DNA from: Basidiobolus meristosporus CBS 931.73
Lineage: Eukaryota; Fungi; Basidiobolomycota
DNA: 49,984 bases
Assembly: GCA_002104905.1 (NCBI GenBank)
Contig: MCFE01000647.1
Coordinates: forward strand, 1 to 49,984
Direction of reading: 5' to 3'
Shown here: piece after piece, positions 2,257 to 49,984 of the stretch
How the letters are laid out: each line of letters opens with the position of its first letter
Position numbering within the stretch: position 1 is the stretch's first letter
The notes under the pieces: model-generated
Told to the model about the DNA's origin: nothing
The model's input: the letters and a program-made list of their open reading frames with translations, nothing else
The model's database searches: none
Translations under genes and position numbers: made by a program

Positions 2257-3132
2257 TTAATTGGATTCGCCTTGGCTATGCTCAAGCGGCATGAAGATGA
2301 TCTTGGTGCCTGAATTCTTGCTCATCGTGCTCAATGTCTCAAGATAACGGATCTGCATTGCAGCAGGAGTATTGAGGATCTCGGCTGCTTCGCGCATCAA
2401 CTTGGCCGAGTCTACTTCGGCTTGAGCAGAAATCACTTTGGACTCTCCAATCCTCTTTTGGGTCGCAGCACTCGACAAAGACTCCTGTAGTTCCTTAGAG
2501 AACTCAAGGTCTTTGATCAGTATTGACTCGACGGTAATTCCCCACTCTCTAGCAGGAATATCAATCATCTCACGAATATCGTCGGCAATTGTTTCTCGAT
2601 TCTCGATACAGTCCTGGAGCACACGAGTGCCAAGAACTCCTCGCAAGGTGGTCTGGGTGCGTTCAATGAGAGCCTGTCGAACGTTGATTACACCGAACAA
2701 CGCCTGGTATGGATCGATTACATGGTAATAGACAACAGAATCAATTTTGATGTTGACATTATCCTTGGTCATGATACGGATGTTTTCAATCAAGGCAAGT
2801 TGAACTTTGATGTCCACGTGATGAAGTTTCTCGGTGAAGACATTTACCGTGGTCAACCCCGGGTCGACACATTTGTAAACACGCCCGAATTGCGACACTA
2901 AGCCTACGTATCCTTGATCCACCTCTTTGTTAGGATTGGGACAGCAGAAGCAGCCAGGAATTGAGCCAAGAGCTCCGAAAAGATTCCCTAGAGCTTGTAA
3001 TGCTACTCCATAGAAACCGGAGACGGGCTCCGCGGGGATTTCTCTAGCAAAGGATTTGGACATCACATGATTGGATGGTTGAGCAGTTAAGACTCCACGC
3101 ACCTCAGAATCTGTAGGTTGCTTGTTAGTCAT
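2257..3132 (-). CDS. Stomatin-family SPFH/band-7 membrane protein (291 aa, intronless)
   Basis: SPFH motifs MTKDNVNIKIDSVVYY, TQTTLRGVLG, WGITVESILIKD and AAMQIRYLETL; Cys-rich GCFCC membrane-proximal segment. Confidence 0.93.
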   Translation of the reverse strand: MTNKQPTDSEVRGVLTAQPSNHVMSKSFAREIPAEPVSGFYGVALQALGNLFGALGSIPGCFCCPNPNKEVDQGYVGLVSQFGRVYKCVDPGLTTVNVFTEKLHHVDIKVQLALIENIRIMTKDNVNIKIDSVVYYHVIDPYQALFGVINVRQALIERTQTTLRGVLGTRVLQDCIENRETIADDIREMIDIPAREWGITVESILIKDLEFSKELQESLSSAATQKRIGESKVISAQAEVDSAKLMREAAEILNTPAAMQIRYLETLSTMSKNSGTKIIFMPLEHSQGESN

Positions 3133-5468: not shown

Positions 5469-8060
5469 TTAGGCCTCAATGTTGGATATCACTGTTAGCG
5501 CACCGAATCCACGCAACGATATGACGGTCCAATCGGGCATACTATCTCGGAAGCTGTCGAGGGTAGGGAGATGTTTCTTGTAGTCGTCGAAGTAACAGTA
5601 TATGGAGATAGGATATTTCTCCATCCTGGCGGTTTTGACGCTGAGCGTGGTGTTCTTTTCGAACTCCCGCTTGAAGACAAAGATCCTTCTGCCATCGATG
5701 CTGCCTTTGATCGGGTTCCCATCAACCGAGTATTCCTCGGCCGGACTGTAGGGAACCAGGAAGCTGCATGTTCTTGTCTCCGGCGCGTAGATTGATAGCT
5801 GGATTTCTCGCCCGCCTCCTACCAAGGCGGTGCTGGTTATCTGGGATGTTATAGGCTGTATCTCTTGGCGGGCAAAGGCTGGTTTCGCGGTCGAATTCCA
5901 AACGCACTCGTGTACTCCGGCATCCCGGAAGCACCTTGTGTCGGCATTAGGATCCAGGGATTTTAGAAGCTTGGGCAGATCGCAGACGGATCGAAACACA
6001 GTCCAGTCATTACCAGTCGCTTGCTCATGGTACACATTGTGGAACACGCGAATTGGCGCTTGGGCATTATATGGGAACAGAACACCAGTCAAGATTACCA
6101 TGAGCACCACCCAGAGCGTCAGTAAGCCTACCAAGCAGGGGAACGAGTCGCCTTTCTGGAACCAGGGGATGATGCAGATTAAACATGTAACGAATGCAAC
6201 AGAGAACAGCACATAAACCATGAAGGGTGGCGTGCCGTCCGCCACGGTCTGGGATGTCGCATCGGATAGGATATTAACGACGTCGATGACCACGAAGAGT
6301 GGAGGCAGGCAGCTAATTGTCATTCGGATTGGCCAAACCCATTTTGGGATGGAGGTGGTCTGGCTCCAGACGCACCACCGGAACTCAATTCCCTCTAGAA
6401 CCAAGGCACCAACAAAGTGAGCCAGGGTGAACCATAGTATGTAATAGAAAATCCCCAGCTTGGAAGCCCCCGTAACGACAGCAATCAGGGTGGCGAACCA
6501 CCAGATTTGCATCATCCCGTGATAGGCCAAGCGGTCCCGGTTGATGTTGGACTTGAACACAAACGTGCTCCCGGAAAATCGGTTTTCGAGCCATCTGGAA
6601 GCCCATTGCGCCATTGCATACGCCCAGACAGTAGTGGAGCAGAAGGCGATTATCACCAGGGTGGGTCGGCCATAGACAACATTCCCGTTCACCTTGGATA
6701 GGTAGAAAGCGAACAGAACGCTGAACAGTATCGCGAAGATGATGGTCAACACTGTGGTAAGTAGCGACCTCAGCAGAGGGAGCACGAACTCCCGCACCTT
6801 GATCCCTTGCGGCTTTTCTCCCGAGTGTCGTCTCATCAGGAAATACCCCAGCGCGTAGAAGAGCGGGATGATGACCAGCAGGGCAATGTTAATCCCGATA
6901 TACCACTTGAAACTGTAGATGGCGGTGGTTTTGCCCAGCAGGTCGTAATGGATGGCGTAGCGAATGGGGAAATTGGTGCCCTGATACAGGTAATCCGACT
7001 TGGCCAATGCTCTGGTGGTTGCGAGGGTCACCCCTCCCATCTGCTGGACTGATTTGGGCGAGGTAGAATTGATGCTGTCTAGTAGCGTATGGTAGTGAGA
7101 TCTGCGTTGATAGAACGCAATATCCAAGCCGGGCAAGCTGTGCTGGTATGCATACACCTCGAAGTCCGTGCTTGACTTGATCAAGCCCAACTTGAAGACG
7201 TCATTGGCGATGACCGACGTGTGTGGGTAAGGGGCGTGGGAATAGAAACGATTCAACGGCTCATCGGACGAGCGAAATACCATGGACCTCCCGCCTGCAC
7301 CTGCGCCCTCCAAATTGATGAATGCCCGAACATCCTTGGACCAGGGGTGGTTCATGAAACCCTCACTCCCAAGCAGGCCTATCTCCTCGCAGTTGTTGAT
7401 GTTGAGGATCACTGTGTCTGCGATGGGGTTTTCAATGATACTACGAGCAATCTCTAGCGCAACCACCACGCCAACCCCATCATCCGTAGCCCCATAACTA
7501 AAGGGGACGCTGTCATAATGAGCGGAAATCAGCAAGGCCTCCGGACGATTCTTGGTTCCCACAACGCGCAGGAGTAGATTGGTGGATTCAAGATAGCGCC
7601 AGCCAGAATATGGTCCCCCACCCAAGCTAAATCCGGTATAGGTGGAGTTGTCATTGGTGACCAGGTCCACCGTTCGATTTAGAGCCTTTCCCCTGGCGGA
7701 GAGCTCGTTCATGACCCCAACTATGTATTCCTGGGTTTTCAGGTTGGCCTCTGAGTTGAAAGGGTGCGGGGCAGATGCAATGGTTTGGAGGTGTCCCCAT
7801 GCCTTGTCTGCGGAAAACGCATCGTTCTCGGTTGCAGGTAGGGGGTCGGGCAGCTGCTTCCGCACTGGTAAAACGATGGCAAAGGCGATGGCGTATACAA
7901 CAATCAGTAGCGAATACACAATGAGCGAATTCTTGGTGGGGAGGAAGCGCGACATCCCCTTTTTTTTCTCATCGTACTCCATCTCAGCCGACAACTTCAT
8001 CTTGTGCTGCACAGGCGAGGACGCAATGTATGCTGATGCAACGACAGGGCCATAGCCCAT
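5469..8060 (-). CDS. M28 family membrane metallopeptidase (ERMP1/Fxna, vacuolar Pff1-like), intronless
   Basis: SAHYDSV, GATDDGVGV, NNCEEIGLLGS, FINLEGAGAGG, STDFEVY, GLDIAFY..RSHYHT; N-terminal TM helix and multi-TM C-half. The track start at 8114 is TTG; candidate ATGs are 8060, 8000 and 7982. Confidence 0.92.
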   Translation of the reverse strand: MGYGPVVASAYIASSPVQHKMKLSAEMEYDEKKKGMSRFLPTKNSLIVYSLLIVVYAIAFAIVLPVRKQLPDPLPATENDAFSADKAWGHLQTIASAPHPFNSEANLKTQEYIVGVMNELSARGKALNRTVDLVTNDNSTYTGFSLGGGPYSGWRYLESTNLLLRVVGTKNRPEALLISAHYDSVPFSYGATDDGVGVVVALEIARSIIENPIADTVILNINNCEEIGLLGSEGFMNHPWSKDVRAFINLEGAGAGGRSMVFRSSDEPLNRFYSHAPYPHTSVIANDVFKLGLIKSSTDFEVYAYQHSLPGLDIAFYQRRSHYHTLLDSINSTSPKSVQQMGGVTLATTRALAKSDYLYQGTNFPIRYAIHYDLLGKTTAIYSFKWYIGINIALLVIIPLFYALGYFLMRRHSGEKPQGIKVREFVLPLLRSLLTTVLTIIFAILFSVLFAFYLSKVNGNVVYGRPTLVIIAFCSTTVWAYAMAQWASRWLENRFSGSTFVFKSNINRDRLAYHGMMQIWWFATLIAVVTGASKLGIFYYILWFTLAHFVGALVLEGIEFRWCVWSQTTSIPKWVWPIRMTISCLPPLFVVIDVVNILSDATSQTVADGTPPFMVYVLFSVAFVTCLICIIPWFQKGDSFPCLVGLLTLWVVLMVILTGVLFPYNAQAPIRVFHNVYHEQATGNDWTVFRSVCDLPKLLKSLDPNADTRCFRDAGVHECVWNSTAKPAFARQEIQPITSQITSTALVGGGREIQLSIYAPETRTCSFLVPYSPAEEYSVDGNPIKGSIDGRRIFVFKREFEKNTTLSVKTARMEKYPISIYCYFDDYKKHLPTLDSFRDSMPDWTVISLRGFGALTVISNIEA

Positions 8061-9925
8061 TTTATAGTAGTCGTCCAAGATTTCAGTCGTCTCTGTTGTA
8101 CTACGTAACTGCAATTCCCATCCTGCAGTTACACCAGAGACAACGTATCCGGATGATACTAGTGGCGGGTAGATGAATGCAAATCCACCGCCCCTATCAT
8201 GGACCTGAAATTGGCATTTAATGTGGATAGAAATAGACTGCTCGGTCGAAGAATGCGCTAACTGGTTATGTATGATACAACCAACTGGAAGTATGACAAC
8301 TACTCCTGTTAAATTTCCGCCATCAATGGAAGCCCAGCCATTTGCACATAGTCACCCTAAAGTGTCAGAACACACCACAGCAAAATCCAGTAGAGAACAC
8401 GAACACCCATTGATATGAAGCCATACCGGAATGGTGTTTCACCTGTAGCACATGACCCTCTTTTGGGTCGATACGATCATTTCGGGTTTAGATAAGCTGA
8501 AACACCCCGGCTGTTCTGGTTACCAATAGAGTGGGCAGTGCTCTTTCCCGCGCTCTACCCTGCAGTAATCACAAGCTTTTGCAACGCACAACAGGCCTCA
8601 GCAAGCTGGGTAACAGCAAGAGATGCAAGCAATGCTACACGGGGAAGCACTACTGGTTGCGTGTATAGATGTGGTAAGGCTATCTGCTTTTTTCTGAGGC
8701 GTAATGTTGATTCGAGCGCCAGTGTGCTTGATCGCAATAACCATGGATTTCCATTATTATCCACAGACACCAACCGCTGAACCGCTCCGCATTGCGGCCT
8801 TCAGACCAACAACATCTAGGGAAATCGAGTTTATGTGAATCGAGCTTTCCGCGTCTGTGATTGGTGTTGGTATGCTCGAGTGAGTGAACATGATCAGGAA
8901 GCCGTCGTTGAATGGTGGGGAGATTAAGCCAGTGTCTGGACCCGAACCTCAGGGTGGGCAGCGGCGATATTCCATGTGCACCTCAAACAAAATTTGATCA
9001 AGGAACACCACACAGAGTCGGTGGGTAGTCGTAGGCGGCACGTCATTGGGTCCATCGGCTTGATTCTTTGTTGTGACCCTATAGCCATAACGAGAGCGCC
9101 ATGCTGTTTTCGTTGAGGTGGTCGGTAGCGGGAGCGACCTCATTCGCGTTTCTCTCCGGCTTGCAAGGAGCTTCAAGCCTGGATCTTCAGATCACAGATT
9201 GCGAATCAATCTATCTCGTCGGTTCCTCACAAAACCTTGGTTATTGTAACATGCCTCCCATTGGCCAGTAGCCAGCAATCCACCCAACCTTCTGATTTGC
9301 AAGACACTTGTGCCACGCTAACACTGAATCACCGAGCCTATTTAACCTTAATAATCTCCGTAGCTATAGCTCATGTAGCATCGACCCATTGCTGGTGCGC
9401 TTCCGTGTAATGTCATCCGTAACCTCGCATTTGGGTTGTGTTGGTGGCGATGTGCCGAACTGTCCTTTTTGGACTTGACTCCGGTCCAATTGCTACGTTT
9501 CGCCTCCTTGAAATGAGGTCGCAGAGGATCAACAGTATGTTCCAGAATTTAATCTTGGGAAACAGTACATGTACGACATTGCCAGACATGGTTGTTCCTT
9601 GAACCAAAACTCAAAATTTACGTGCAATGAATGGAGAAAATAAATACATGAATAGGCGAGAAAAATCATGAACATAGCAAGCAAAACTATTTTGGGACAC
9701 TTAAGGGCAGAGAGATGAAGTCCCAGCAAGCCACAATCCCCTCGAGTGGGATGTCCGGGTGAGGGAAATGCGCCGGCTGCGACTGACAAGGGTTTGACGG
9801 TCTATGACTAATGAAGTGGGAATTTGCTGAGGTAGTTGAATATCCGGTATGTATACTGTTGTGGTAACGATGGATTTGCGAGGTGCTCGGAATGTCTTCA
9901 AATTGGGCCTAATTGCGATCATAGA

Positions 9926-24099: not shown

Positions 24100-27000
24100 T
24101 CAGCCTCGGTTTCGCTGTCGATTTGGTGACCAGGAGCAATACTGCTTGAGAGTAGGCTCGATCTTCTCTTTGGTAACAATCTTGCTCAGAACGACATTGA
24201 ACAGGCCGGCTTGGGGAACATTTCGTTCGTAAGCAGTGACTGCTATAATCGGGGTGTCCTGGTTGAGGTTCTTCGTCGACTTGATCATTCGGGCTGCAGT
24301 GAAGCCGTCAACTAGTATGCAGCACTGTTAGCTGTATTCATTCGTGGACTCGTTGAATATTACTTACTTATCGGCATTTTGATATCCATGAAGATTATGT
24401 CGAATTTGACTTTACCCATACAGCATCGAATAGCTTCAGCACCGTTGTAGCATACAACAGAATTGCAGTGAAGCTTTTCCAGAATTCTTTCCAACAGCTT
24501 TGCGCTTATAGCATTGTCATCAACAATGAGGCAATTAAGGCTGGTGCGATTCTCGTTATTGCCATTTCTTGTCGTAGAGGCGTAGGTATTTTTATAGCTC
24601 GGGAAGCCGAGTCTACTAGAGGACGCCAAAGATGCGGTTCGGGGCCGGGATAAACTAAGCTGTCGTTTTGTGGACTCCCCAGGGATCTCCGATGGATTGC
24701 CCAGCTTTCCACACCAAGACATTCGAGAATTCGGAAGCGAGGAAGACATGGTGGCGTTAAAGGTTTTCATTAGTGAGGAGTTCAGCGCGCAAGGGACAGA
24801 AATGTTTCGCGAGCGTGTAGGGGGGATAGCCAGATTTTGCTCATCAGAGTCGGATCGTAAGTGAATCATACTATGCCGCTTGGCGGATCCAGCGATCGAA
24901 GGGTCGGATTTCAGTCTTCTAATAACATCATCGTTTGCTTTTGCCAATACCTCGAGGTTTTTGTACGAAAAATTCCCGAAGTCAACATTGTTGGGATCAG
25001 CTACATCAGACGGCAACGTGTGCACTACTGCACCACTTGTTTGATTGTGATGGGTTGGGTGCTGGCCATGATCTGGGCCTGTATCCGTGCTGAGTTCAGG
25101 ATGTTCGTCCGCGTCGAAATGGGCCATTAGTGCGCCCCTACCATCGAAGTAGTCGGTGTCTTCGATGCTCTCAGGCTGAGGAATAAACGCTGGTCGTTCA
25201 GTCAACAGTGTTTCCCAATCAATGCCTGCAAAAAATGGGTGACTCTTGACTTCGTCTACGCCGTTTGCTCCAAGTCTCTTCTCCACATCGGTGGACATTA
25301 ATCTCTCCATCAGGTCTCGCGCCTCAGGAGAAATATGTACTTGTCCTTCATACCAATCAATGCTTCGCGAAAGAATGTTCTCAAACACTTCCTCTGGTGA
25401 ATCAGCATTAAACGGCGGGATTCCGTAAAGAAACTCATACAGAATCACACCTAGCGCCCACTTGAAGAGATCGTTAGCGACTTGTGGAAGAAGAAGAGAT
25501 CGACTACTTACCCAATCCACCATGGCATCTTGCCCAGTTCCTAGAATACTTTCGGGTGCCAAGTAGTCCGGTGTACCGATGCAACTCTTAGGTACCTCCT
25601 CCTCCTTGATATTTTGGATGGCTTCATCAGTCAATAACAAGTTTCCCAGCGGGGTGCCCGGCGTCCCCGGAATGCTGATTCCACCAGATATACTGTCCGA
25701 GGTATTGCTTGTAATGGAGTTTCTGCGGCTTTCCAGGAAGGTTTGAACATGAAACTGATGCTGTGTTTGCGAAACCGTATTAGATGAATCAGAGCCTGAG
25801 GGATAGTCAAGGTAAGGAGACGATGGTCCATAAGAGTCGCGCTTTCCTCCATGGGTATTGACCTTCAGCGAGGTGGATTGATTGCGTGCACGTCTGTTTA
25901 AAAACCCAATTCTGGATAAGCCAAAGTCTGTAAGCTTGAGGTGGCCATTTTGATCGATAAGTAAGTTATCAGGTTTGAGATCCCTGTGCAATCTCGAAGT
26001 TAGTGACCTTAATCGGAGAGATCAAAAGCATATATTACTCACCGATGAACAATCCCTTTACCGTGAAGGTATTCTAGGCCAAGAACGACCTCGGCCAAAT
26101 AATTCCGCGCCCATTCTTCAGGTAGTTCCCCCATACCCTTGATCAACGCCGCACAATCCCCACCATTTAAATACTCCATAACAAGGTAAAGGTAATCCTT
26201 ACTTTGAAAAGTAAAATAAAGCTTCACGACAAATGGGGAATCTGTTTGCATGATCAATGCTTTTCGTTCGGCCTTCACATTCATAACTTGGTTTTTAGCA
26301 ATCATGTCGGACTTCTTCAAAACCTTGATGGCAAAGTATTCTCCGGTGGTCCGTTTCTTGGCGAGAAACACGGATCCAAATGCACCTTTGCTTATTGGCT
26401 TGATTATTTCAAAGTCCTTGATACTTATTTGGGCTGGACGAGGGCCGGGAGTAGAAGGGCCAAGAGTCGGGGAGTATGACATGCTGCTGGATAGACTATC
26501 TTGCCATAGTTTGGATGATTTCGGTGAGCCAAGAGGGGATTGAATACTATCCATCTCTTTCAGAGTTAGCCTTGGTCGTCTTGATGTTGTTCTGCCATGC
26601 TTGGGCAAGTTTGTTTCTACCGTCGACAGAGCATCACTTTTTACTTCAATGGATTGGTCGAGATTGAATTCCTCAATGTTTTGTTCATCGATTAGACCTC
26701 CATCCCATTCGAGCTTCATCTTGGCTTCCCACTGAGCTTCTGCTTTCTCTCCTTTTCGGATGACAGTGAGCATCTCCTGGGTTGCTTCTAGTTTTGCTTT
26801 GATAGAGGCTTGAATGTTCAGTAATAGCTGTTGAGTCCCAGGATCTTCAGTAGAAGGGGACCAGGCAGAGATCTCTTTCCAATTTTGCGCATCCTCTAAT
26901 GGTACGTCATTCTGGTAATCCATTGGCTTGATTGCTATCGTAAGGTCGAGAATATGCTTGGTAGATTTAAGGATCTCCAATGTGTTGTTTTCACTATCGA

Positions 27001-30000
27001 GGGTTCCTTGGATAGCGTTGCAGATTTCAAAGATTTCCGCGCGTGTCTCCTGAAGAGAGTCATCGCAAGTCTGCAATTTTCTTTCAACCTGATGTACCTC
27101 GGTACAGAGTTCAGAGTGAGCCTCAAAAAATAATGGAGAAACCATACGTTCACAAATATGACACAGAACATGCGGAGGAAGCGGTTGAAGCGGCATTGGA
27201 GATCCACTTTGTGAGCCACTTTCAGAGATGTATTCTAAATTCTTGAATTTTTCGTCTCTAGTCAAGTGGTCCCTTTCTACGTTAGGCGACCCGTCATTCT
27301 CGGGAGTGTCCATATCGTCAAAATCCTCACTCCCAATGTGACTCAACTCTGAATCCTTCCAAGTGTCTTCTTCGTGTTCGCTAACCGGCTGAATGACCCA
27401 AAGTGTATGCGAAGGCTCACCATTAATGTGATCAGAATACCCAAGGATCCCTTTTGCTTCCATTGTAGCCCAGCGCTGCGATTCCCTATCGCCATCTTTG
27501 TTTTTTTGCAGCAAAGAAAATCGAACCTCAATTGTCTGGGTGTCGTCGAATAAAAGTTGAGAGGTCGCGATCGAAAAGATGTTTGCATCACTCTCGGGCA
27601 GAAATTCCGCTATTGAGTGCCCTAGAAGTACGTAAGGATCTGACCTATTTATACGCAAGCAAATGATAAGTCTGACTTTCCGAACCAAATAGAAATACCT
27701 GAATACACTATACCCCATGAGGTCCTTCCAAGCCGGACTTAAATAGCGAAGTTGAGCATCATTGAGTGTTAGCTCCATAACAATGCTCACACCTTGGCCT
27801 TCTTCCACCACTTTTCGAAGCTCATTAATATCATTCTTGGTTTTGTTCGTGTCAGATCTAGTGTTCTTTGCCCGCCGCCGCTTCTGCTTTGGCTTTGTGT
27901 CCTTTAGGGAACTCTTCGATTTTTCCACTGTGGCCTCTTTTGCCTTGTCGACGAGACTCCCATCCGGTTTAGCATACTCCTTTTCCAGTTTCTCTGCCTC
28001 TCGGAGTTGAATGCTAATATTCAAGTATCCCATGAGAGTCAGCAATCGAGAGAACATCTCTTTATGAGGCCAGTTATTCTTGAACCACTGAATCTGGATT
28101 TTGGTCATGATATTGATATAATTCTCCATTTTCCCTTTGGTCAATTTCGATTGATCTATGTCGTGGATGTCTTGGCCGATTGAAATGAAATCCATTGCCT
28201 TCTGCAAAAACGGAGTTGGGCAAAAAGAGTCCTCTGCGATTGGAACGACAACCGAACTGCGTCGCTGTAGTGGGAATGGCGCAAGATTATCGTGAGTAAA
28301 TCGATTCTCGGAGTTTGACGGCCAAAGCTGAGCTGGATGAACTGACGCATTACTAATTAGGCATCAAAACCAATGCAGTGATACAAACTCACCATTATCG
28401 GATGCAAGGCTGCCCCGAGGATGTAACAAAGTGTCAATCTCAGTGTCATGGGGTTTATCTTCTGTAATCCCAAGTGTTTCCATAGCTATAGACCTCGAAT
28501 GAGACGCTATCCGAGACTCATATTCCATTGATGAGGTTTCCTTGGGAGATGTGGATAAAATACGTAAACCAGCTTTCTCGTCGTCATCAGCGTGCACAGA
28601 TATGGTCGGGGTTGAAGCAAAAGAGCGTGCCTCTCTCCCACTCAAATTGCCATCACTCTCAACATCGTTTAAACCTTCTGAAGCTTGGATATAATTTACG
28701 AGTTGATCGTCATAACTGTCATTTGATAGAGCATCGGCGTCATCTTCCTCCTCAACATAATTCAATGTTCCTTCAACAAACTGATTCAGAATCTCAATAA
28801 TCTCCCTGATCAATTGATCGCATTGTTTTTTGCGATATCGAATATCCTTCTCAAGGTTTCGCTTGGTCACCTCCGAAGGGAGCGAGGAAAGCTTGAAGAC
28901 TTTCCCGCTCCCAGTAGACGAACATCCTGAATACGAAACGGCCCGGGACATAGGCACAAGCTCAGGCAAGTGATCAAAAACATGCCGCTTCTTAGAATTG
29001 CCTCTCTGATGGGTCTTCTTTGTAGTGGAAGTCAGCGGAATTGGGTGAAGATGTAATCGCTTGTTGCGCTGAAACTCCTCGTACGTTGCAGGAAGATCGA
29101 AATTCATTGGCGTTTCCAAAAGCTCGTAGCATATATCAACAACTTGATTCCACCATATCAAATACTCTCTATTTCTCTTGTAAGTATCCAAAGGGCGATC
29201 ATAGCCATCAGCTAAAGGCGGATTATATATCCAATTGAACCAATGTGTCTCTGCAGAAGGTCTATGTTTCGACCAGTCTTTTGCTTTCGCAACTCTTGAT
29301 CGATACAACTTACTAGCATATGAATATGCAGTTGATTGAAATAATGAGGATGATGTGTGATATTCTTCAGGATAGTGATGCTTGGTGTCGCTTGTAGGGG
29401 AGCTCGGCTCCGATGTCGTGTAGGCATAGGTAGATGGTGGGTATATCGGCTGCACCACGTTAATAAGCTCTGGCTTTGATGGATGGTTGTCTCTCACTTT
29501 CTGGCCCTCAGTACCTATCCTCTTTATGGTATTGATATTTTCGATTCCAAGTGCGTTTTTACCCCACGATTTTGTGATGTTGTCAGTGAATGCCTTTGTT
29601 GGTTGAAAACGGTTGAATTTCACATTGCTAACGGATAACACCCGACGATGTCTTGTTTTTGGAAGCTCCAGGGGAGGTGATCTTACGCTAGGGAGCCTCA
29701 TGTTCCCTTGTGACATGTAGCTATCATCAGCGAAGTTGGCATCGATGAGTGAGGCGCGTTTAGACTTGACTAAGTATCTTCCACTAAAAGCTGAGGAGGA
29801 GCTTGCTGAATTGGTCGATGTCAGTGCTAGAGGGGATGTAGGGACACTTCCCCATTCGCTGGGAGAGCCTTCTCCGTTGTATGACGCAGTACGAGTTCTT
29901 CTCCATGAGAAATCAGAGTCATTTGAGCCAAGACCTGCATCTTGCGGCTTACGTACATTCTCGGTATATTTATTGACATTCATAACAGTATCTATTAAAG

Positions 30001-31378
30001 AGGATCTTCGAGATCGGGTCCATCCCCTTCCATTAGCTAGAGGGTTGAATACTTTTGACGATAAGCGATTCGAGCCGTGGTCCTCCTCGAAATAATTCCC
30101 GTCAGTCACGATAGAAGTAGGCCGCGAAGATGTGGATAGGCGATTGGGAGTAGCCAATGGTGACCCGTGAGATCTTGGAGAGTTTGTCTTTTCCGTAAAG
30201 CTGAACTCTCCAGAGCCAGCAGACGACGAGGAACGACTAAGAGGACGGACGAGCAAAGGCTCAGGTATTGGGACGCACCTGATTTTAGCGCTGTCTGGTA
30301 CAGGTGTTAGTGAGAGTTTGGGTGAAGATGAGAGCGAGTCTGTAGCATCAGCTCTATCACTTTCTGGCTTCCTCCCTATTCTCGAATGACTATCAGCAGC
30401 CCTCTTTAAAGATTCTATACTTACTGGTGCTGACGGCAATGTTGAATCAGACAACCAGGGAAAATATTCTCCATGATGAACCTTTGTTGGGTCCCCAGAC
30501 TTTTCTGGCATGCTCTTAGCATTTGAGGTGGGTTTTCCGTTAAAAGGAGAGGATTCAGCCTGAGTGTCTGATTGCCCTTTGAGTATGTCTGAATGCTCAT
30601 AAGGACGAGTAGGAAAATATTCATGATCTGACAAGGGATCAGGTGCCAACTCGTTCTTGCCAGGAGTGTCATTGAACCTGCTACTTCCAGCTAGAAAAGA
30701 AAGGGAATCGACAATCTGCTTGGTATCTCCAGCGTGCATGCTAGGAACTGATGTAGTTGTCATCGAGGTGGTGGGCTGCGCTACCAGAATATCATTCTGC
30801 TTGTCAATGAGCTTGGGCTTTTTGAAGTCCTCATAATTATCAGAAGGTAAAGGTCCGGGGGACGGTAGAGGTGACAATTCTTGACCGCTCTGCTCCTCTT
30901 CATCGAGACTTAGCTTCGACCCGAGAAATGACATACTGGCTTTGTCTGTCAAGTGAGTTTCCGATTTGGAGATTCCAACTGGATTCAATAAAGTGGGCTG
31001 TAAGCTATTGTCTTCAATATCGTCGCTCTGCTTTCCAGTGGAAACATTTCTGCTGGAATAGGAGCCAGATTTGAAGAAATTCTGTAAGCCAGTAACTAGG
31101 CCGCTTTTTTTGGGACTGCTAAGTTTCTTTGGATCTATCTCTTTCTCTTTGTCAGCCTTGCTGAATTGCTTGGAGCCCAATTTTCCCAAGAAGCCGGTGG
31201 AAGATTTTGGTTTACTCTTTTTGGGTGACTTTGAGGGAGCCGAATCATGTGTGGGGTCGTTGGCTTGTGAGTTGGGTGCCCATATTGCATCAGGTTTTGC
31301 CGCCAATAGGTCCGGGGTTGATTTGCTCTTGGTTTCAAGATTGGCAGGAGTGTCAAATGGTGGCTCAGGAGATGACAT
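24100..31378 (-). CDS. RIM15: Rim15/Cek1-like AGC kinase with PAS, C2HC zinc finger, split kinase domain and C-terminal receiver (~2330 aa, 6 exons)
   Basis: ISKGAFGSVF, YFAIKVL, HR/DLKPDN, DFGLS, a long insert, GTPDYLAPE, DW/WALG; CHICE...H..C finger; REC IVDDN...FMDIKMP. Introns 28392-28342, 27713-27645, 26042-25984, 25511-25461 and 24367-24312 join four track ORFs in frame. Confidence 0.9.
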
Positions 31379-34300
31379 TATAATCAATATAGATATATGC
31401 AAAGGTTCGAGTTTGATAGGATACAGTAGTAGAGTAGGAGGCAGCTCTTAAAGCACAGAAAGAATATGGGAACCACAGTAGGTGATGTAGATGTATTGGA
31501 ATAAACCAGGTTTATAGGAGAATAGCAAGGGACATCTTTCTTTGGGAACTTCGCTGTCTACCTCTTGGAAGGCCTCGAAGAGTTGAGTTCAACCAATCAA
31601 AAGAATACGTGATTACCAACGCCAGAAATAACTTGCAAAGTAGACTAAGTAGCAGAAGATATACCTTTGAGGATACCAAGAGAAAATCGAATATAAGGGA
31701 CTTGACAACACTGAATAATAGGCAAGCGAAGGCTCTGAAATAAAACGAACCCTAAGGGGAGGTCACCTAGCAATCAATTGATTGATAGAATAGAGCCAGG
31801 GAGCAGGCCTACAGAAATATCGAGGATGACCAAGCATGTCAGCGGGCATTTAACATGAGCAAAACATAGATCTATCGAATGATTTCCATATTTGGCCGGA
31901 ACATAGGATATTATGAAATATATTAGATAGTTGTGTTCATCAAGAAACCGTTTGACATCGACAGTATTATTCTTCAATTTCAATTTCCTGTGAAATCAAA
32001 TATCTACAATTGCACCAGCATATCTATACAGCCCTGGCCATCATATCCTCATTATCTAAGGCTGCACCCAGCCTTCATGACGAGCCTGGACGAAGGTCGA
32101 AGCAGGCGAACTGGATTACTGGGACGCCATGGCGCACCACAACAAACGTACATTTGGGGAGAGTTGATGGTTGCGTGACTGGTTCCTCCCGGTGCAGCAA
32201 TCCATCTGGGTTACGTTGTAGTGAGGACTCTGCGCAAGAATCGGGGCTGTGTACATGTTGCCACTGATATTTGCAAGAATAGGAGAAACAAATAGGGAGA
32301 TTAGATCAAGGTGACTGGAATCTGACCGGATCTTGGTCATGGGAAATCAGAGCAGCCGGTAGTTAGCTGACGAAACTCATGGCCAGTTGTTTGAGTCATA
32401 CGCTTCCTCTTGACACGATTGATTCAAAAACAATTGAAGTTGATTAGTTAAATTAGGAACATTCTACTGGATCAGTCGGCCTATTTGCTAGTAAACTGAG
32501 GCTTGACACTACTGCGTTGATAGGGCTGAGATTCCCAACCTTTCCCCCACTCAACTATTACATGAATGCTGCACTCTGTAGTAAATATCCGCACCATAGT
32601 GGATACATACAGCAATCTCATCGATACACTTGAGAGCAATTGCCCATGTTTTTACTGGGTCAGGGTCGTTACAGATGCCCTGGATATGCAGGTCATTGGT
32701 GTGCGCTGATATGTACTACGCATTGTGACTTTTGGGGAGAATCAATACACTGATGCACTGTGCCCGGGGTATATGCCATCCAGCGGGATCGTAATCCCCA
32801 AATCATCGAGTACTCAGTTGAGGATCATGCTAATGTTGAATCCGACCTAACCAGCTGTGTTTGCACAACTCATTCTGACGCAGCCAAGCTTGTTTTTCTG
32901 CTACATGATGGGCAAATCTTCCCACGTCCAACGGTTAACTTACCAGCCATAGGGTATACGCGACAGACTGACTCCCGCCATTAGGGAGGCTATCTCTTTT
33001 TGTGGCCAGTTACGATCAAGATTGTTCAGGAATTGGGCAATGCTGAGATCCCAGGATCAGCCGACCCAGGGTGTAGCAAAGAGCATTGTTGATCGTCCAG
33101 AATCCACCATATTCTCCCAAAATATCCATACCCTTTGGGAGGCTGGCGACAAGTTGGTTATTATTGTGGTCTCCGGGGCCATTGCCATTTCAATCTAATC
33201 CTCCTTCTACGTGAACTTTGCATTCCTGTTCTAATTTCCCAAGATTCAACCAAAAGATTCCTGATCTCCCAGCATGTTGGGTGATACGATTCATGGGCAA
33301 TGGATTCAGAATCCTCTCTTTGGGTTGAAATAATTAAACTACTGTCATTTCCAAAATAAGCATGATTGTTGTATTGATTTGGTATTGAAATTGGCAGTCC
33401 CATTTACAGAGACATTTTCTCCATTATAATTGGACAGAATATTGCTTTAATGTTCCTGACAAAACTATTGTAGCTCTATTACACTCCATCAAACTTGGCA
33501 TTTGTCGCGGTGGCTGTACTTGGGTTTTTACGGATCTATTCAGAAATAGGGACATTTTGTTGCGTATCGGGTATTCCGACACTTGAAATTGCTTGCCGCA
33601 CGTGAGATCAGCAAGAAGGATTTGAGGCAATGTTCTCTACCTCCTATTTTCGCATCAGGACTAATGTTAGTTCCTTCACTTGACAACAGTTTGCTGCAAG
33701 ATAACAGACTAACGACCATTAATGTATACATTGGAGCCTGGAATAGTGTTGTTTTCGTGGCTTATGTAATGATAGATTTGTACATTCTATTTTATTCCTA
33801 TTAATCCAGAATCGATTCTACACTGGGGAGGGGGACGGCGATAGGGCCCCGGATTGCCCACTGATTTGCTCGTTACTGGCCGCAGATGGTGATGAACATT
33901 TGGAGAGACGAGGAGTTGATTTGCCTTGGCAGTTTAAATATGTAAAACCCCCAATCTTGCCTAGTGATAGTTCAGCGGTGATTTTTTCTGCTCTGAAATC
34001 TCATAATATCGATACCTCACGTGTTAATCTGCTACATCCATACCATGTGTGTTGGTTCGAGGATTGAGTCTGTATCACCTATGGACAACACATGAGTACA
34101 TCCTGGGCATAATGCAATGGTGGAATGCCTCAAAAGATGTAGATGTGATATCTGGCCTCATGACTATACAATGAGGAAGGGTGACTCATTTGTCTTAAGC
34201 TAACGATGACACAAAGAGGTTACCAATTGTTAACAAAAATCACTATGAATGACTAACACCTGGCCTTATTGATTGGTATCATCTTCGAGTAAGGTGGGCT

Positions 34301-40722: not shown

Positions 40723-41265
40723 TTAAGGATGTGCACAAACCCAACCTCCACAGTAATACCGCATATTCCAAAAACGCCTGAGAATACCTTTCGAAGGCGT
40801 TTTCTCGGTCTTTTTGCCTGGTGTGATGGCATCCCTTCCCACTCTTGGATGCGTTAGAGCCTGCTCTTGCATAGAGTTTTTACTAGGGGTGGGTGCGCAT
40901 GTCCCACCATCGCAGCGTCTGCCCTTGTTCCAAAGCCCTTCGAACATTTCTATGAAATACTGGGCAACTCTGACGGTGTAAGATTCTTTTTGAACAAGGC
41001 TCTCTGGTTCGAGAATAGGTGTGGGCTGTATTTTGTGCCTCCCAGATAATGGGCAAACGACCCCGTGACAGTGTTGCTGCTTGTTCCATAAGAGCTTAAC
41101 TGGTCGGGAATTCGACGCCGTGGTATGTGGATCTGGGTGGATTTGACCTGTGCGGTATGACACCAAATCCGTCGGTTGTTCATAGTAGGGAATGGGAGAT
41201 GAATCCACTTTATACATCAGGCTGAAGACAAAAACTGTTACTGGCACGAACATAACCACTCTCAT
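40723..41265 (-). CDS. Orphan secreted peptide precursor (180 aa) with three WN-x4-C-x-G-x2-C modules
   Basis: ATG at 41265 gives the signal-peptide-like MRVVMFVPVTVFVFSLMYKVDS-SP. Modules lie at 41088-41050, 40932-40891 and 40770-40726, with RR dibasic sites. TATAAGTA lies ~50 bp upstream (41321-41314). Confidence 0.7.
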   Translation of the reverse strand: MRVVMFVPVTVFVFSLMYKVDSSPIPYYEQPTDLVSYRTGQIHPDPHTTASNSRPVKLLWNKQQHCHGVVCPLSGRHKIQPTPILEPESLVQKESYTVRVAQYFIEMFEGLWNKGRRCDGGTCAPTPSKNSMQEQALTHPRVGRDAITPGKKTEKTPSKGILRRFWNMRYYCGGWVCAHP

Positions 41266-42751: not shown

Positions 42752-42940
42752 ATGTCCCGTCAAGCCCATCCCATGCGTATCGAAGTGGTGTCCACCAAAC
42801 CACTTTCCACCCATAGTGCTTCCAAGAGAATGAAGAAGTTTTTGGCCGAGAATACTGCCGTGCATACTCTGCCTAATTCCGTGGTATATCAACTGAACGA
42901 AATCAATCGCTCTATCAAGAAGCCCTCAAAGAAGGACTAG
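42752..42940 (+). CDS. Small basic protein, possibly RNA polymerase I subunit A14-like (62 aa)
   Basis: The pattern P..I....KPLS...A...MKKFL......LP.SVVYQL..I.R resembles the two-helix Rpa14 core; clean ATG-stop ORF in otherwise AT-rich DNA. Confidence 0.5.
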   Translation: MSRQAHPMRIEVVSTKPLSTHSASKRMKKFLAENTAVHTLPNSVVYQLNEINRSIKKPSKKD

Positions 42941-43972: not shown

Positions 43973-46411
43973 CTAAAATTTGTACGTCCATCCCTCACCG
44001 CTACCTTCATCCTCTCGTGAATCGTTGCCGCCGTATTCCCCACTTGAGCCTCCGCCGTTTCCGCCATAATTACCTCCGGAGCCGCCGCCACTACCACCAT
44101 AGTTGCTAACAGAGCCACTACCGTTACCGCCATATCCACCGGAGCTGCCACCGTTACCACCATAATCACCTCCTGAGCCGCCACCATTGCCCCCATATCC
44201 ACCAGAAGAGCCACCACCATTACCACCATATCCACTAGAGCCACCACCGTTACCGCTATATCCACTGGAGCCACCACCGTTGCCGCCATATCCACCACCG
44301 CTACTATACTTGGTCTCAGAGCCACTACCGTTACCACTGTATCCACCGGAGCCACCACTGTTGCCTCCATATTCACCTGAGCCACCGCTGCTACCACCGT
44401 AACCACCAGAGGAGCCACCACCACTGCCTCCATATCCACCGGAAGAGCCACCACCGCTACCTCCATATCCACCGGAAGAGCCACCACCACTGTTATACTT
44501 CGCCCCAGAGCCACCGCCGTTACCACCATATCCACCGAAGCCACCACCATTACCTCCATATCTACCAGAGCCACCACCGCTACCACCATATCCACTGGAA
44601 CCACCACCATTGCCTCCGTATCCACCAGAAGAGCCGCCACCATTGCCTCCATATCCACCGGAAGAGCCGCTACCACTACCTCCATATCCACCAGAGCCAC
44701 CACCATTGCCTCCATATCCACCAGAAGAGCCACCACCACTACCTCCATATCCACCGGAGCCACCACCATTGCCTCCATATCCACCGGAAGAGCCACCACC
44801 GCTACCTGCATATCCACCGGAAGAGCCACCACCGCTACCTCCATATCCACCAGAGCCACCACCATTGCCTCCATATCCACCAGAGCCACCACCGCTACCT
44901 CCATATCCACCAGAAGAGCCACCACCACTACCTCCATATCCACCAGAAGAGCCACCACCATTGCCTCCATATCCACCAGAAGAGCCACCACCGCTACCTG
45001 CATATCCACCGGAAGAGCCACCACCGCTACCTGCATATCCACCGGAAGAGCCACCGCCGCTACCTCCATATCCACCGGAAGAGCCACCGCCGCTACCTCC
45101 ATATCCACCAGAAGAGCCACCACCATTGCCTCCATATCCACCGGAAGAGCCACCACCGCTACCTGCATATCCACCGGAAGAGCCACCGCCGCTACCTCCA
45201 TATCCACCGGAAGAGCCACCGCCGCTACCTCCATATCCACCAGAAGAGCCACCACCATTGCCTCCATATCCACCAGAAGAGCCACTACCACTGCCTTCAT
45301 ATCCACCGGAACCACCACCATTGCCTCCGTATCCACCAGAAGAGCCACCACCATTGCCTCCATATCCACCAGAAGAGCCACCACCGCTACCTGCATATCC
45401 ACCGGAAGAGCCACCGCCACTACCTCCATATCCACCGGAAGAGCCACCACCGCTACCTCCATATCCACCAGAAGAGCCACCACCATTGCCTCCATATCCA
45501 CCAGAAGAGCCACTACCACTGCCTTCATATCCACCGGAACCACCACCATTGCCTCCGTATCCACCAGAGCTGCCGCCGCTACCTCCATATCTACCGAAAC
45601 CACCGCCGTTACTGCCATAATACCCTCCTGAGCCACCACCACTGCTGTACTTGGTCCCAGAGCCACCGCCATTACCACTATATCCACCAGAGCCACCACC
45701 GTTGCCTCCATACTCTCCTCCTGAGCCACCACTACCACTGTAGCTATTTCCTGAACCACCTCCACCGCCGTATGTGGCGCCAGAGCCTCCCCCATTTCCA
45801 CGATAGTCACCACCAGAGCCATCTCCTTCACCACTGTATTCAGCAGAGCCTCCACCGTTGCCGCCATATTCACTACTGCCACCAGAACCACTGCTTCCAC
45901 CATACTTAGCTCCAGAGCCTCCGCCGTTACCATCACCGTTACCTCCATACCCACTAGAGCCATCACTATTGCCGCCAAATCCACCGGAGCCACCACCATT
46001 ACCACCGTATCCGCCAGAGCCGCCACTGCTTCCTCCATAGTAGCCACCTGAATCATCACTGTTTCTTCCGTATTCATCGCCAGAACCATTATCATTCAAA
46101 TCGTCATCTTCGCCTGAGCCGTTACCACCATAATTAGCACCAGAGCCTGCTCCATTGCCACTGTAGTCCTCTCCGGAGTCGCTGCCGCCATATTTAGCTC
46201 CAGAGCCACTACCATTTCCTCCATGGTCAACACCAGAGCCACTTCCGTTACCACCGTATTCAGTTCCAGATTCACCATTACCAGCGTTATCCACAGCCTT
46301 ATCATCATCAACCCCCGAGTAATCCTCTAGGTTGTAATCACGTCTTATTACAGCCGCATTGGTAATTGCGAGGACAGTCAAAGCAAACAATACGTTGGAT
46401 GTGAATTTCAT
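43973..46411 (-). CDS. Secreted glycine/serine/tyrosine-rich repeat protein (812 aa)
   Basis: Signal peptide MKFTSNVLFALTVLAITNA, a Kex2-like RR, an acidic leader, then GGY(G/A/E)G(S/N)GGGS(S) repeats, ending in GWTYKF with no GPI-type hydrophobic tail. Confidence 0.9.
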   Translation of the reverse strand: MKFTSNVLFALTVLAITNAAVIRRDYNLEDYSGVDDDKAVDNAGNGESGTEYGGNGSGSGVDHGGNGSGSGAKYGGSDSGEDYSGNGAGSGANYGGNGSGEDDDLNDNGSGDEYGRNSDDSGGYYGGSSGGSGGYGGNGGGSGGFGGNSDGSSGYGGNGDGNGGGSGAKYGGSSGSGGSSEYGGNGGGSAEYSGEGDGSGGDYRGNGGGSGATYGGGGGSGNSYSGSGGSGGEYGGNGGGSGGYSGNGGGSGTKYSSGGGSGGYYGSNGGGFGRYGGSGGSSGGYGGNGGGSGGYEGSGSGSSGGYGGNGGGSSGGYGGSGGGSSGGYGGSGGGSSGGYAGSGGGSSGGYGGNGGGSSGGYGGNGGGSGGYEGSGSGSSGGYGGNGGGSSGGYGGSGGGSSGGYGGSGGGSSGGYAGSGGGSSGGYGGNGGGSSGGYGGSGGGSSGGYGGSGGGSSGGYAGSGGGSSGGYAGSGGGSSGGYGGNGGGSSGGYGGSGGGSSGGYGGSGGGSGGYGGNGGGSGGYGGSGGGSSGGYAGSGGGSSGGYGGNGGGSGGYGGSGGGSSGGYGGNGGGSGGYGGSGSGSSGGYGGNGGGSSGGYGGNGGGSSGYGGSGGGSGRYGGNGGGFGGYGGNGGGSGAKYNSGGGSSGGYGGSGGGSSGGYGGSGGGSSGGYGGSSGGSGEYGGNSGGSGGYSGNGSGSETKYSSGGGYGGNGGGSSGYSGNGGGSSGYGGNGGGSSGGYGGNGGGSGGDYGGNGGSSGGYGGNGSGSVSNYGGSGGGSGGNYGGNGGGSSGEYGGNDSREDEGSGEGWTYKF
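44600..45570 (-). repeat. Coding minisatellite: about 30 near-perfect 30/33-bp units
   Basis: + strand units such as CCACCGGAAGAGCCACCACCGCTACCTCCATAT; includes a 228-bp higher-order duplication (matching landmarks at 45281 and 45509). Confidence 0.95.
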
Positions 46412-48054
46412 GTTTCCTACAAAATGAATGCTCTTTTCCTCTCTCATTGTCGTCTTTTATACAATGTGCCTAGAGGATCTCCAGGGGAAAGTTCACGTGG
46501 TAGACGAGAAATGGTTCCTATGCAATCCGGCTCCTTCCCAGATTCTCTGGACAGTCCATTGAATAAGAAATGTGAATCTCCTAAAGTAGCCCACCCAATA
46601 GCAATATCTTGCCAGCAGAGAGATCCGGATGACAGGTATTGAAGGACTCCCGGATTTACATAGATTTGTCTAAATCTGATTGATCTGCTGTAGTACATGC
46701 ATATGATCTCATCAAGCGCCAGGAAGGATTGTGTGTTTAAAATCCCCTAATTTCATCATACAGCACGATGCTTAGCTCAAGCCGGATGCATTGGATTGGC
46801 CAAGTCGAGCCAAGGATCACCCACCTTTTCACACCTCTAGCCAACACTCGTTAGATGAGAGCAGTTTCCTACAATGTTACAACATACATCAGATCTCCAA
46901 CAACGATGTCCAATAGCAGCAGCGCTACACACTTGGTGGAAGTTGAGCATCACCAGCTGGGGAAAGGATACTTCGGCCTGATCAGATCTGAACATTCAAT
47001 ACGCTGATGAGACAGCAGGTGGCCGGGATGAAAGGTTCCAATGGAAATATGCATCTCATACTTCGAGGCTGATCAACAGCAAGCACCATGTCAAAAAGAA
47101 TGTCCGATTCCCCGGGGGTCAGGGTTGCTTTTGCTTACTACGCTTACGCCCTGTCAACCCGTGCTACCTTGGTCTTGAATACAGACGCTCAGGAATCCTC
47201 GTATCATAGCCGCGGCAGGGCTCTGAAGACCAGACGCTCAACAATTTTTGATCAACACTGACCATACTTGCGCTGCTGGGGCGGGCAATTCTATACCTAG
47301 GAATCTCTTCCACACACGCCTAGTTGTTGTGTTGCCATAGATTTCAACCTTATGGAAGGTCCACGTGATTTGGGAAGGTTTTGCCATTCGGTTGGTACCT
47401 AGAGCAGAAGGGAAGTTACGTTTGCTCGCTTGCAGAAATTTGGATCGCTGTTTACTGAGGTGTTGGCATCATGCACCGGCGTTTGGTTAGATACGTATTA
47501 GGGCGGCTTTGTCCTATAGGCTGGAATGTTTGGTGTCACGCTATCCAAAAGATCTGGACGGGCCCGCTTCTCATTCATGTTCGTGCATCCCTTCACCCTG
47601 TAGCAATGCTGCCTATATCGCACAATCAATTAGAATCCCCCACGGGCTTGTTGCTGGAAATTTCGCAGGGGGATGTGCAGACATTGTTGTATCTTCTTGT
47701 GCCGTCTGGAGCCGCCCCTACTTTTTCGGCGATGCCTTGACGAATACACCCCTCTATGAACTTGATCTGATATTTTCTGGCATCTACCTTGTGATCATGG
47801 CCTGTACCAGGTGAACTTTGTATTAATGTGGACATACATGTTTTGAGAACGGTCCTAAAAAGCCAGGTGCTCAAGGTCGCTTTGTAACTTTCAGGGTCAC
47901 TACTATTCCAAAGAACTAGGCAGTATCACACTGCTAATACTTTATATACTGGTGCAATTCCCCAGGTGGTATATCCCAATACACAAATACACTCTTGCCA
48001 GATTTTCTTTTGCTATTGTTGTGGGCTTCAGCACTTCAGTTTCATGTGCGGTGC

Positions 48055-48556: not shown

Positions 48557-49984
48557 CTAAATGTTCATACTGACTAGTCCTAATTTTGACCTAAAATATT
48601 CAAACTTGTCTCTAGCTAATGGTTTGGTAAATATGTCTGCAATCATTTCATCTGTAGGACAGTAAACTAAGCTAACTAAGTTATTCTCTATAGCTTCACG
48701 TATGAAATGATGTCTAATATCTATGTGCTTGGTTCTAGCATGAAAAGTTGGATTTCTACCTAATTGTATACATCCTTGATTATCTTGAAATAAAGTAATA
48801 GGCGTTTTTTGACATAGGCCTAAATCTGTAAAGAGCTTTCTTAACCACATTGCTTCTTTTGTAGCTTCACAGGCTGCCATATACTCTGCCTCTGTAGTAG
48901 AAAGTGCTACGGCTGGTTGCTTTCTTGAATTCCATGAAATGGCTCCTTTACAGTAAAGAAAGGTGTATCCTGTGGTGGATCTTCTGTCTTCTAAATTTTG
49001 TCCCCAATCAGCATCAGAGTATCCCACAAGATCCTGTTCTGAATCCTTATAAGTGTATCTTAAGCAGATATCAGCAGTTCCTTTTAGGTATCTAAAAATC
49101 CGCTTAACTGCTGCAATATGATCAGATCCATAATTCTGATTATGTTGGCTGACAACTCCCACTGAATATGAGATATCTGGACGTGTTCCAAGCATGATAT
49201 ACATCAGACTGCCGACCATAGATTGATAAGGAAAGTCAGGGCTTTCAGATGGCACCAAGCTCTCTTGATTTGGTTGAGTTTTGACCAAGTTAAGGTTTGT
49301 CTCCATTGGGGTAGCTGCCGGTTTACAGTCTTCCATTTTGTACTTCTTTAGTATATCTTGAATATACTTGGATTGGCTTAGGGTAATAGTCTGGGTACTT
49401 CTGTCTATGGAGAACTTAATCCCTAAGTAGTAACTGAGTTCTCCTAGATCGGACATCTTGAACTCCTTAGATAGGCTGGATTTAGTCTCTTCCAATGTTT
49501 CTAGGTTATTGGTGGCTATAATAAGATCATCCACATATAGAGCTAATAGAACTGGATTTGCTCTATCTGGCTTATAGTATATACTATAGTCAGCATTACT
49601 CCTTTTGAAACTCAAAGATTCCAAATAAGAATCTATCTTGCAATTCCAGGCTCTCGGTGATTGTTTGAGACCATATAGTGACTTTTTAAGCTTGCAGACC
49701 AAATGGGGGTTATCTTGGTCAACAAACCCATCAGGCTGGTCCATATACACGTCCTCATCAAGTTCTCCATTCAAAAATGCAGTTTTTACATCCATTTGAT
49801 GAATAAAAAACTTATATTTGGCTGCAATAGCCAATATTAATCTGATGGAATTAAACTTGGCTACCGGTGCAAAGGTCTCAGTATAGTCAAGTCCTTTTGT
49901 TTGAGAGTATCCTTTAGCTACAAGTCTTGCTTTGTATCTTTCAATTGTACCATCAGCCTTGTACTTTGTCTTGAAGACCCATCT
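48557..49984 (-). mobile_element. Ty1/copia pol (reverse transcriptase + RNase H); open to the window edge, 5' part outside the window
   Basis: Uninterrupted frame: RWVFKTK, RYKARLVAKGYSQ, QMDVKTAFLNG, LYGLKQSPRAW, YVDDL, GYSDADW, EAEYMA, HIDIRHHF, ADIFTKPL. Confidence 0.98.

Follow-up and report, generated by a model that had tools for sequence, protein, structure and literature searches.

Kex2-processed repeat proteins (KEPs) are an established class of fungal proteins (Le Marquer et al., 2019, PMC6339444; Umemura, 2020, PMC7329392) consisting of an ER signal peptide and repeated short cores bounded by KR or RR, with no other domain, and they constitute an architectural class, not a homology family. 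Among 1461 surveyed fungi, Basidiobolus meristosporus CBS 931.73 was the richest in such proteins, with 43 KEPs (PMC7329392). Ascomycete alpha-type pheromone precursors (MF-alpha, Ppg1/Ccg-4) are likewise secreted precursors from which several near-identical peptides of 10-16 residues are excised at KR, and ustiloxin-type RiPP precursors (UstA and other dikaritins) also combine a signal peptide with Kex2-bounded repeated Tyr-containing cores. In animals, C-x4-C ring peptides are derived from the prohormones of oxytocin/vasopressin and urotensin II. Basidiobolus is a deep-branching fungus that is associated with the gut of amphibians and reptiles and is occasionally pathogenic to humans and animals; to our knowledge, nothing is known of peptide signalling or peptide weapons in this genus.

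The DNA analysed here (the window) is the whole 49,984-bp scaffold MCFE01000647.1 of B. meristosporus CBS 931.73 (assembly GCA_002104905.1). The ORF at 40723-41265 corresponds to an annotated gene, whose 180-aa product (P0001) was found on record in NCBI, UniRef, and EukProt by exact-protein look-ups, which returned genome contigs only. P0001 is probably an exported precursor, of which the last 16 residues, FWNMRYYCGGWVCAHP, would be the released product.

The precursor gene and its relatives in Basidiobolus ranarum

The ORF codes for a secreted-type protein with three WN-x4-C-x-G-x2-C modules that contain all its cysteines (Cys66, 71, 118, 123, 172, and 177), as described in a first-pass annotation of this DNA; translation, motif counts, and shuffles agreed on this point. 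The back-translated motif occurred exactly three times in the window, always in the frame of P0001, and did not appear in any of 100 dinucleotide shuffles. A six-frame regular-expression scan of the window again detected three occurrences in the same frame. The conserved residues of modules 1/2/3 are encoded by AAC/AAC/AAT, TGT/TGC/TGT, GGG/GGT/GGT, and TGC/TGC/TGT. Since synonymous codons differ among the three modules, the repeat has been kept at the protein level and does not reflect a recent DNA duplication.

The signal-like N-terminus noted in that annotation was also borne out by simple criteria: it contains one basic residue followed by a 12-residue hydrophobic stretch (Kyte-Doolittle mean 2.77), and the predicted cut after residue 22 has small residues, V/S, at -3/-1, with no transmembrane-like segment downstream. 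The features of the precursor are collected in Table 1.

Table 1. Positions of the precursor, its predicted parts, and the adjoining 62-aa gene. Positions refer to the window unless a B. ranarum locus is given (L001, on JASJQH010007427.1; L002, on JASJQH010000004.1).
Feature	Residues of P0001	Position	Strand	Basis
Single-exon CDS, prepropeptide P0001	180 codons + stop	40723..41265	-	translation
Predicted ER signal peptide MRVVMFVPVTVFVFSLMYKVDS	1-22	41200..41265	-	heuristic
Module 1, diverged ring unit LWNKQQHCHGVVCP	59-72 (W60-C71)	41050..41091	-	motif scans, alignment
Module 2, diverged ring unit LWNKGRRCDGGTCAP	111-125 (W112-C123)	40891..40935	-	motif scans, alignment
Predicted kexin (Kex2) cleavage site, Ile at P4	RR163-164	40774..40779	-	aligned with KR of P0002, P0004
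Canonical C-terminal 16-mer FWNMRYYCGGWVCAHP	165-180	40726..40773	-	translation and conservation
62-aa gene, window		42752-42940	+	
62-aa gene, L001		4497-4685	-	
62-aa gene, L002		2104-2292	-	

An exhaustive phmmer/HMMER search of 1.84 billion representatives with P0001 as query revealed two real relatives and no others: P0002 (209 aa, E 1.7e-21; KAK9709205.1) and P0004 (169 aa, E 1.1e-6; KAK9768829.1), both hypothetical proteins of B. ranarum. A further match, the repeat protein P0003 (1608 aa, E 1.8e-7), was discarded, because its score adds up from seven weak and identical stretches of 27 residues in which neither cysteines nor motif were conserved. The gene had been regarded as an orphan, a view that the finding of two syntenic homologues overturned. 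The start Met of P0001 lines up with the starts of both homologues in the alignment. These show the same signal layout and cut position, with T/A (P0002) and S/A (P0004) at -3/-1, and the hydrophobic cores of the three proteins lie at residues 3-14 with KD(12) values of 2.3-3.1, each accompanied by one basic residue and none followed by a transmembrane-like segment; the signal peptides of P0001, P0002, and P0004 were judged solely by heuristics.

P0002 contains three units, EKR-FWNMRYYCGGFVCGHS-KR, FKR-FWNMRFYCGGWACIHA-KR, and FKR-FWNMRYYCGGWVCAHT-R-stop, of the pattern FWNMR[YF]YCGG[WF][VA]C.H., in which KR (positions 69, 87, 123, 141, and 191) precedes all three units and follows the first two. 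Its three 16-mers are near-identical and differ at positions 6, 11, 12, and 14 and at the last residue. P0004 contains a degenerate unit, FKG-LRDTYYHCNGLVCSHI, and then a canonical C-terminal one, FKR-FWNMRYYCGGWVCMHA-stop, with four cysteines in total. C-x-G-x2-C is kept in every module (8/8) of P0001, P0002, and P0004.

No further members of the family were found. A word-index search with P0001 alone returned only P0001, a word search with the three-protein alignment added nothing to these three proteins, and a search with 60-aa module fragments, reaching proteins of 33-105 aa, had no match. That annotation had recognised no family for the gene, and this still holds for Pfam, a PDB profile search, and the literature: Pfam gave nothing for P0001 even at E values as high as 10, P0002 and P0004 had nothing above cut-off at E up to 1, the PDB profile search with the family gave no match, and the peptide string of the core was found in none of the papers searched. 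An Anti-LPS-SCYG match of P0002 scored 16.3 bits against a cut-off of 25 bits and had no counterpart in P0001 or P0004; it was attributed to chance. Feature matches in the ESM Atlas were all below 0.8, with TM of 0.26 or less, and the Atlas model of P0002 had a pLDDT of 0.44. A metagenome DNA scan with the family-specific back-translated core gave 0 matches; five matches to a looser ring pattern had stop codons beside the motif, showed neither KR nor a signal sequence around it, and were set aside as chance. In the searches made, the core FWNMRYYCGGWVC.H. was found only in Basidiobolus proteins, with no counterpart in Pfam or in the literature. P0001, P0002, and P0004 are likely to form a small family of KEP-type prepropeptides, so far restricted to the genus; the family is new, within the known KEP class.

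Comparison with known precursor classes

P0002 fits the KEP description fully, with near-identical cores and all the expected separators. P0001 has the repeats in degenerate form, its modules sharing only the W-N-C-G-C skeleton, and of the separators (KR, RR, or KK) present throughout P0002 it has only the one ahead of module 3. With degenerate repeats and no separators, P0001 probably fails the screen of Umemura, and the B. ranarum assembly (GCA_040143965.1), judging from its later accession number, fell outside that survey of October 2019. With modules 1 and 2 devoid of dibasic separators, P0001 would not pass a strict KEP screen, which counts against the reading of this protein as the precursor of a released 16-mer, as do its spacers of 36-50 aa, which are long for a KEP. 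By homology, P0001 can be assigned to a KEP family, although it is itself a degenerate KEP.

The peptides of alpha-type pheromone precursors share with those predicted for Basidiobolus a composition rich in Trp and aromatic residues, two cysteines around a Gly-containing loop, no further modification, and no DUF3328 neighbour. The pheromone peptides of Sordariomycetes and Dothideomycetes have two conserved cysteines and a Trp, like the Basidiobolus core (PMC6339444). Their cysteine spacing is longer than the C-x4-C of Basidiobolus, however, and Pfam searches gave no match to MF_alpha or MF_alpha_N (P0001 at E up to 10, P0002 and P0004 at E up to 1). No Ppg1/Ccg-4-type precursor was present among the HMMER matches, and no STE13 XA/XP dipeptides follow the Kex2 site, all five canonical units beginning with F-W. 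No Basidiobolus peptide pheromone, no connection with a mating locus or a receptor, and no paper tying Zoopagomycota to Ste2 or to a pheromone receptor was found in the literature. From its sequences, the Basidiobolus family thus lies outside the known alpha-pheromone families, though it is built like them. With oxytocin/vasopressin and urotensin II the analogy would extend to the signal peptide, the dibasic excision, the six-residue disulfide ring, and a short aromatic-rich peptide; the ring sequence differs and no homology was detected. Arthropod multi-copy neuropeptide precursors were among the weak look-alikes in the ESM Atlas, at 0.75-0.77, where values below 0.8 correspond to chance level.

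The KEP architecture, together with a core containing Tyr-Tyr and Trp, could also be explained by a precursor of the ustiloxin/dikaritin type, in which the Tyr/Trp-rich core would be cross-linked or modified by dedicated enzymes after the Kex2 cut. Tyr-containing cores have been linked with DUF3328 cyclisation factors (Umemura, 2020, PMC7329392). Dikaritin cores are of the 4-residue YxIG type, whereas those of Basidiobolus have 16 residues with a Cys pair, in a host outside Dikarya. DUF3328 (UstYa) was absent from the Pfam matches of the window's ten largest ORFs besides the precursor and of the called genes within 10 kb of the three loci, and no tyrosinase, methyltransferase, or other tailoring gene was found among the large window ORFs or those called genes. 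The neighbours are housekeeping genes, and a disulfide requires no dedicated enzyme. With no tailoring gene among the ORFs and called genes covered, we consider a RiPP of this type very unlikely.

Conserved neighbourhood and selection

On the strand of P0001, the gene order is: a Gly/Ser/Tyr repeat protein gene, the 62-aa gene (which runs the other way), the precursor gene, a Cyt-b5 fatty-acid desaturase gene 831 bp beyond it, and then bestrophin and a BCDH-kinase-like gene on the opposite strand. All three precursor genes are located between the conserved 62-aa gene and the Cyt-b5 desaturase gene, with bestrophin/BCDHK genes beyond. The 62-aa proteins of B. ranarum are 85-87% identical to the window copy; this conserved, very basic protein (MSRQ.HP.R.EVVS...KKPSKK[DE]), without Pfam match above cut-off, is always encoded next to the precursor. 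The same neighbourhood in three loci indicates that these are orthologous or paralogous loci and not chance look-alikes. The long ORFs at 24360-31402 (-) in the window code for protein-kinase domains and for receiver domains of response regulators, and a homologous gene for a 2306-aa protein near the precursor gene of L002 extends the synteny beyond the segment described above.

B. ranarum has the whole segment, made up of RNR-alpha, the 62-aa gene, the precursor, and the Cyt-b5 desaturase, in two diverged copies, one of which has a serpin gene inserted before the precursor gene. The saturation of synonymous sites between these copies is in keeping with a duplication, segmental or of the whole genome, that took place long ago.

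Other features of the window were also recorded. The ORF at 43973-46447 (-), annotated as a CDS at 43973-46411, codes for a protein of 812-824 aa with a signal-like N-terminus, MKFTSNVLFALTVLAITNAAV, and about 37 copies of an 11-residue GGYGG[NS]GGGSS unit (33-nt period). This protein matched no Pfam model and is possibly secreted, with a structural or adhesive role and a composition rich in Gly and Tyr. At the end of the scaffold, 48557-49834 (-) codes for a reverse transcriptase of the Copia type (RVT_2, E 5e-57); a Band_7 ORF lies at 2257-3132 and an M28 peptidase ORF at 5469-8114.

Among the three loci, pS was 0.73-0.87 and pN 0.10-0.13 for the neighbouring desaturase gene, and 0.60-0.89 and 0.02-0.08, respectively, for the 62-aa gene. 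These neighbour-gene pS values of 0.60-0.89 indicate that synonymous sites between the loci are saturated or nearly so. Within the precursor gene, the C-terminal 17 codons showed pN of 0.02-0.08, pS of 0.44-0.94, and amino-acid identity of 88-94%, and the middle region (40-85 gap columns) showed pN of 0.48-0.54, pS of 0.70-0.81, and identity of 23-30%. Each of the three genes ends in a module with the identical 13-residue core FWNMRYYCGGWVC, with 3-6 synonymous codon differences between them. The C-terminal module is thus under strong purifying selection and the remainder of the precursor is almost neutral. An invariant core in a drifting scaffold indicates that selection acts on the short peptide and hardly on the scaffold, and such peptide-focused selection is the signature of a propeptide that serves to deliver an excised peptide.

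These data also bear on the origin of the ORF. A chance ORF or a decayed sequence picked up by annotation pipelines could account for its weakly positive codon-usage score (0.02 vs 0.07-0.15 for clear genes), and we estimate that an ORF of 190 codons would arise about 0.3 times per 50-kb window at 44% G+C. Intact ORFs in all three syntenic loci of two species with saturated synonymous sites, pN far below pS in the C-terminal module, and three motif occurrences against none expected leave this explanation hardly any probability; it is effectively refuted by homologues, synteny, and selection. The ORF represents a genuine and conserved B. meristosporus gene.

Predicted processing and possible roles of the 16-mer

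The KEX2 site of fungi is KR or RR (PMC6339444). All five canonical units of the family are preceded by [IL]-x-[KR]-R (LEKR, LFKR, IFKR, IFKR, and ILRR) and then begin with F. Kex2 prefers an aliphatic residue at P4, as in LDKR of the yeast alpha-factor, and the I/L at P4 of the canonical sites fits this specificity; RR is less favoured by kexin than KR. P0001 contains three dibasic sites: RR116-117, inside module 2; KK151-152; and RR163-164, directly before module 3. Thus, of the three modules only module 3 has a dibasic flank. In the alignment, module 1 falls on the first unit of P0002, which is canonical and flanked by KR, but lacks a dibasic flank of its own: at the places where KR precedes the first two units of P0002, P0001 has K-L-L and E-G-L, and the degenerate unit of P0004 has K-G-L. 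In module 2, with EG in place of the KR of the relatives, the internal RR is located between WN and the ring, with Lys at P4, and is not conserved in the relatives. Both inner modules keep W, N, C, G, and C and have changed at other positions. They resemble canonical units that have diverged and lost their dibasic flanks, and their retained W-N-C-G-C points to a residual constraint beyond a single-product model.

From these features, the following route can be proposed. The signal peptide, cut after about residue 22, would bring P0001 into the ER, where the two cysteines of each C-x4-C module could oxidise to a six-residue ring; in the last module, Cys172 and Cys177 are predicted to close it. 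A late-Golgi kexin would then cut after RR163-164. Since the unit is located at the extreme C-terminus, its sequence ending directly at the stop codon, one cut would be sufficient to release the secreted 16-mer. In B. ranarum, the three 16-mers of P0002 would be released by KR cuts on both sides and Kex1-type trimming. The inner modules of P0001 would most likely remain in the fast-evolving pro-fragment. The predicted products are all 16-mers of 1.93-2.02 kDa, with a net charge of about +0.8 and 31% aromatic residues. Secretion, ring formation, cleavage, and release of the 16-mer are all inferred here from the encoded proteins. The earlier proposal of a secreted precursor of small two-Cys peptides of the Kex2-processed kind agrees with the clean KR-unit-KR form seen in P0002. 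The two peptides that it expected to be released at RR sites fared differently: FWNMRYYCGGWVCAHP is supported by selection and by RR163-164, and CDGGTCAPTPSK was not sustained, its release depending on a cut inside a module and on a monobasic cut, at sites that are not conserved.

The same annotation had proposed that all three modules are released as different disulfide-loop peptides, diversified within P0001. All modules do keep W-N-x4-C-x-G-x2-C with synonymous codon differences, the same five positions would be kept in both inner modules by chance with a probability of about 0.005 (our estimate from alignment identities), and module 2 does contain an RR. The flanks argue against it, since neither module 1 nor module 2 has a dibasic site before or after it, KL-L and EG-L standing where P0002 has KR; furthermore, the RR of module 2 separates WN from the ring, and freeing CDGGTCAPTPSK would require an additional monobasic cut. 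We consider this proposal unlikely. Since only the last module keeps its dibasic site and the inner ones have diverged, the precursor probably yields a single canonical 16-mer and not three peptides.

A signal-like N-terminus, six cysteines, no known domain, and a C-x-G-x2-C skeleton present in all modules of the three proteins would also be compatible with an uncleaved, effector-like small secreted cysteine protein, with a mature chain of about 158 aa and its cysteines in structural, possibly inter-module, disulfides. For such a protein, the middle region is unexpectedly close to neutral and rich in indels, and P0004 has only four cysteines. P0001 was predicted to be mostly disordered by AlphaFold2 from the single sequence (mean pLDDT 44), in line with the low pLDDT of P0002 in the Atlas; this is as expected for a propeptide scaffold and counts against a folded cysteine-knot effector. 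In addition, the conserved [IL]-x-[KR]-R ahead of each canonical unit and the KR behind each internal one point to excision. An uncleaved protein is therefore quite improbable, and release of the 16-mer remains the preferred reading.

Regarding the role of the 16-mer, its extreme sequence constancy and the absence of tailoring genes lead us to lean, tentatively, towards a receptor-directed signalling peptide, pheromone- or hormone-like. An agent aimed at competitors or hosts seems a weaker candidate, and a part in metal-binding or redox chemistry an improbable one; the remaining probability falls to roles of other kinds. A peptide unchanged across two species with saturated silent sites, while its precursor drifts, is what would be expected of a ligand or of another sequence-specific bioactive peptide.

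Another peptide proposed for the same genome, the 14-mer DLHDFCGGWFCGHV, has six of eight ring-and-tail residues identical to CGGWVCAH of the window peptide and six of eight to CGGFVCGH of P0002. The strings of both peptides fit the pattern aromatic-CGG[WF][FV]C-[GA]-H-x-end; DLHDFCGGWFCGHV starts with Asp-Leu-His, against FWNMRYY in the window core, and no 5-residue word is shared. Kinship between DLHDFCGGWFCGHV and the P0001 family seems reasonably likely, as judged from the peptide strings. If real, kinship with what would be an amplified gene family would shift the balance towards a bulk secreted agent over a signal. A more specific hypothesis, which we put forward as doubtful, is that the FWNMRYYCGGWVC.H. 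16-mer is an endogenous peptide signal, secreted by Basidiobolus and sensed by a receptor (a pheromone or a developmental/quorum hormone) and forms with the DLHDFCGGWFCGHV genes a genus-specific CGGW-ring superfamily.

As a single 16-residue ring peptide, the predicted product is a sharply defined and cheaply testable candidate. The family also shows how such a precursor evolves, with three cleavable copies in one species versus one cleavable and two diverged copies in the other. If the signalling hypothesis is true, early-diverging (non-Dikarya) fungi would have in the 16-mer their first defined ribosomal peptide signal, and if the link to DLHDFCGGWFCGHV holds, the CGGW ring would represent a major class of secreted products of Basidiobolus.
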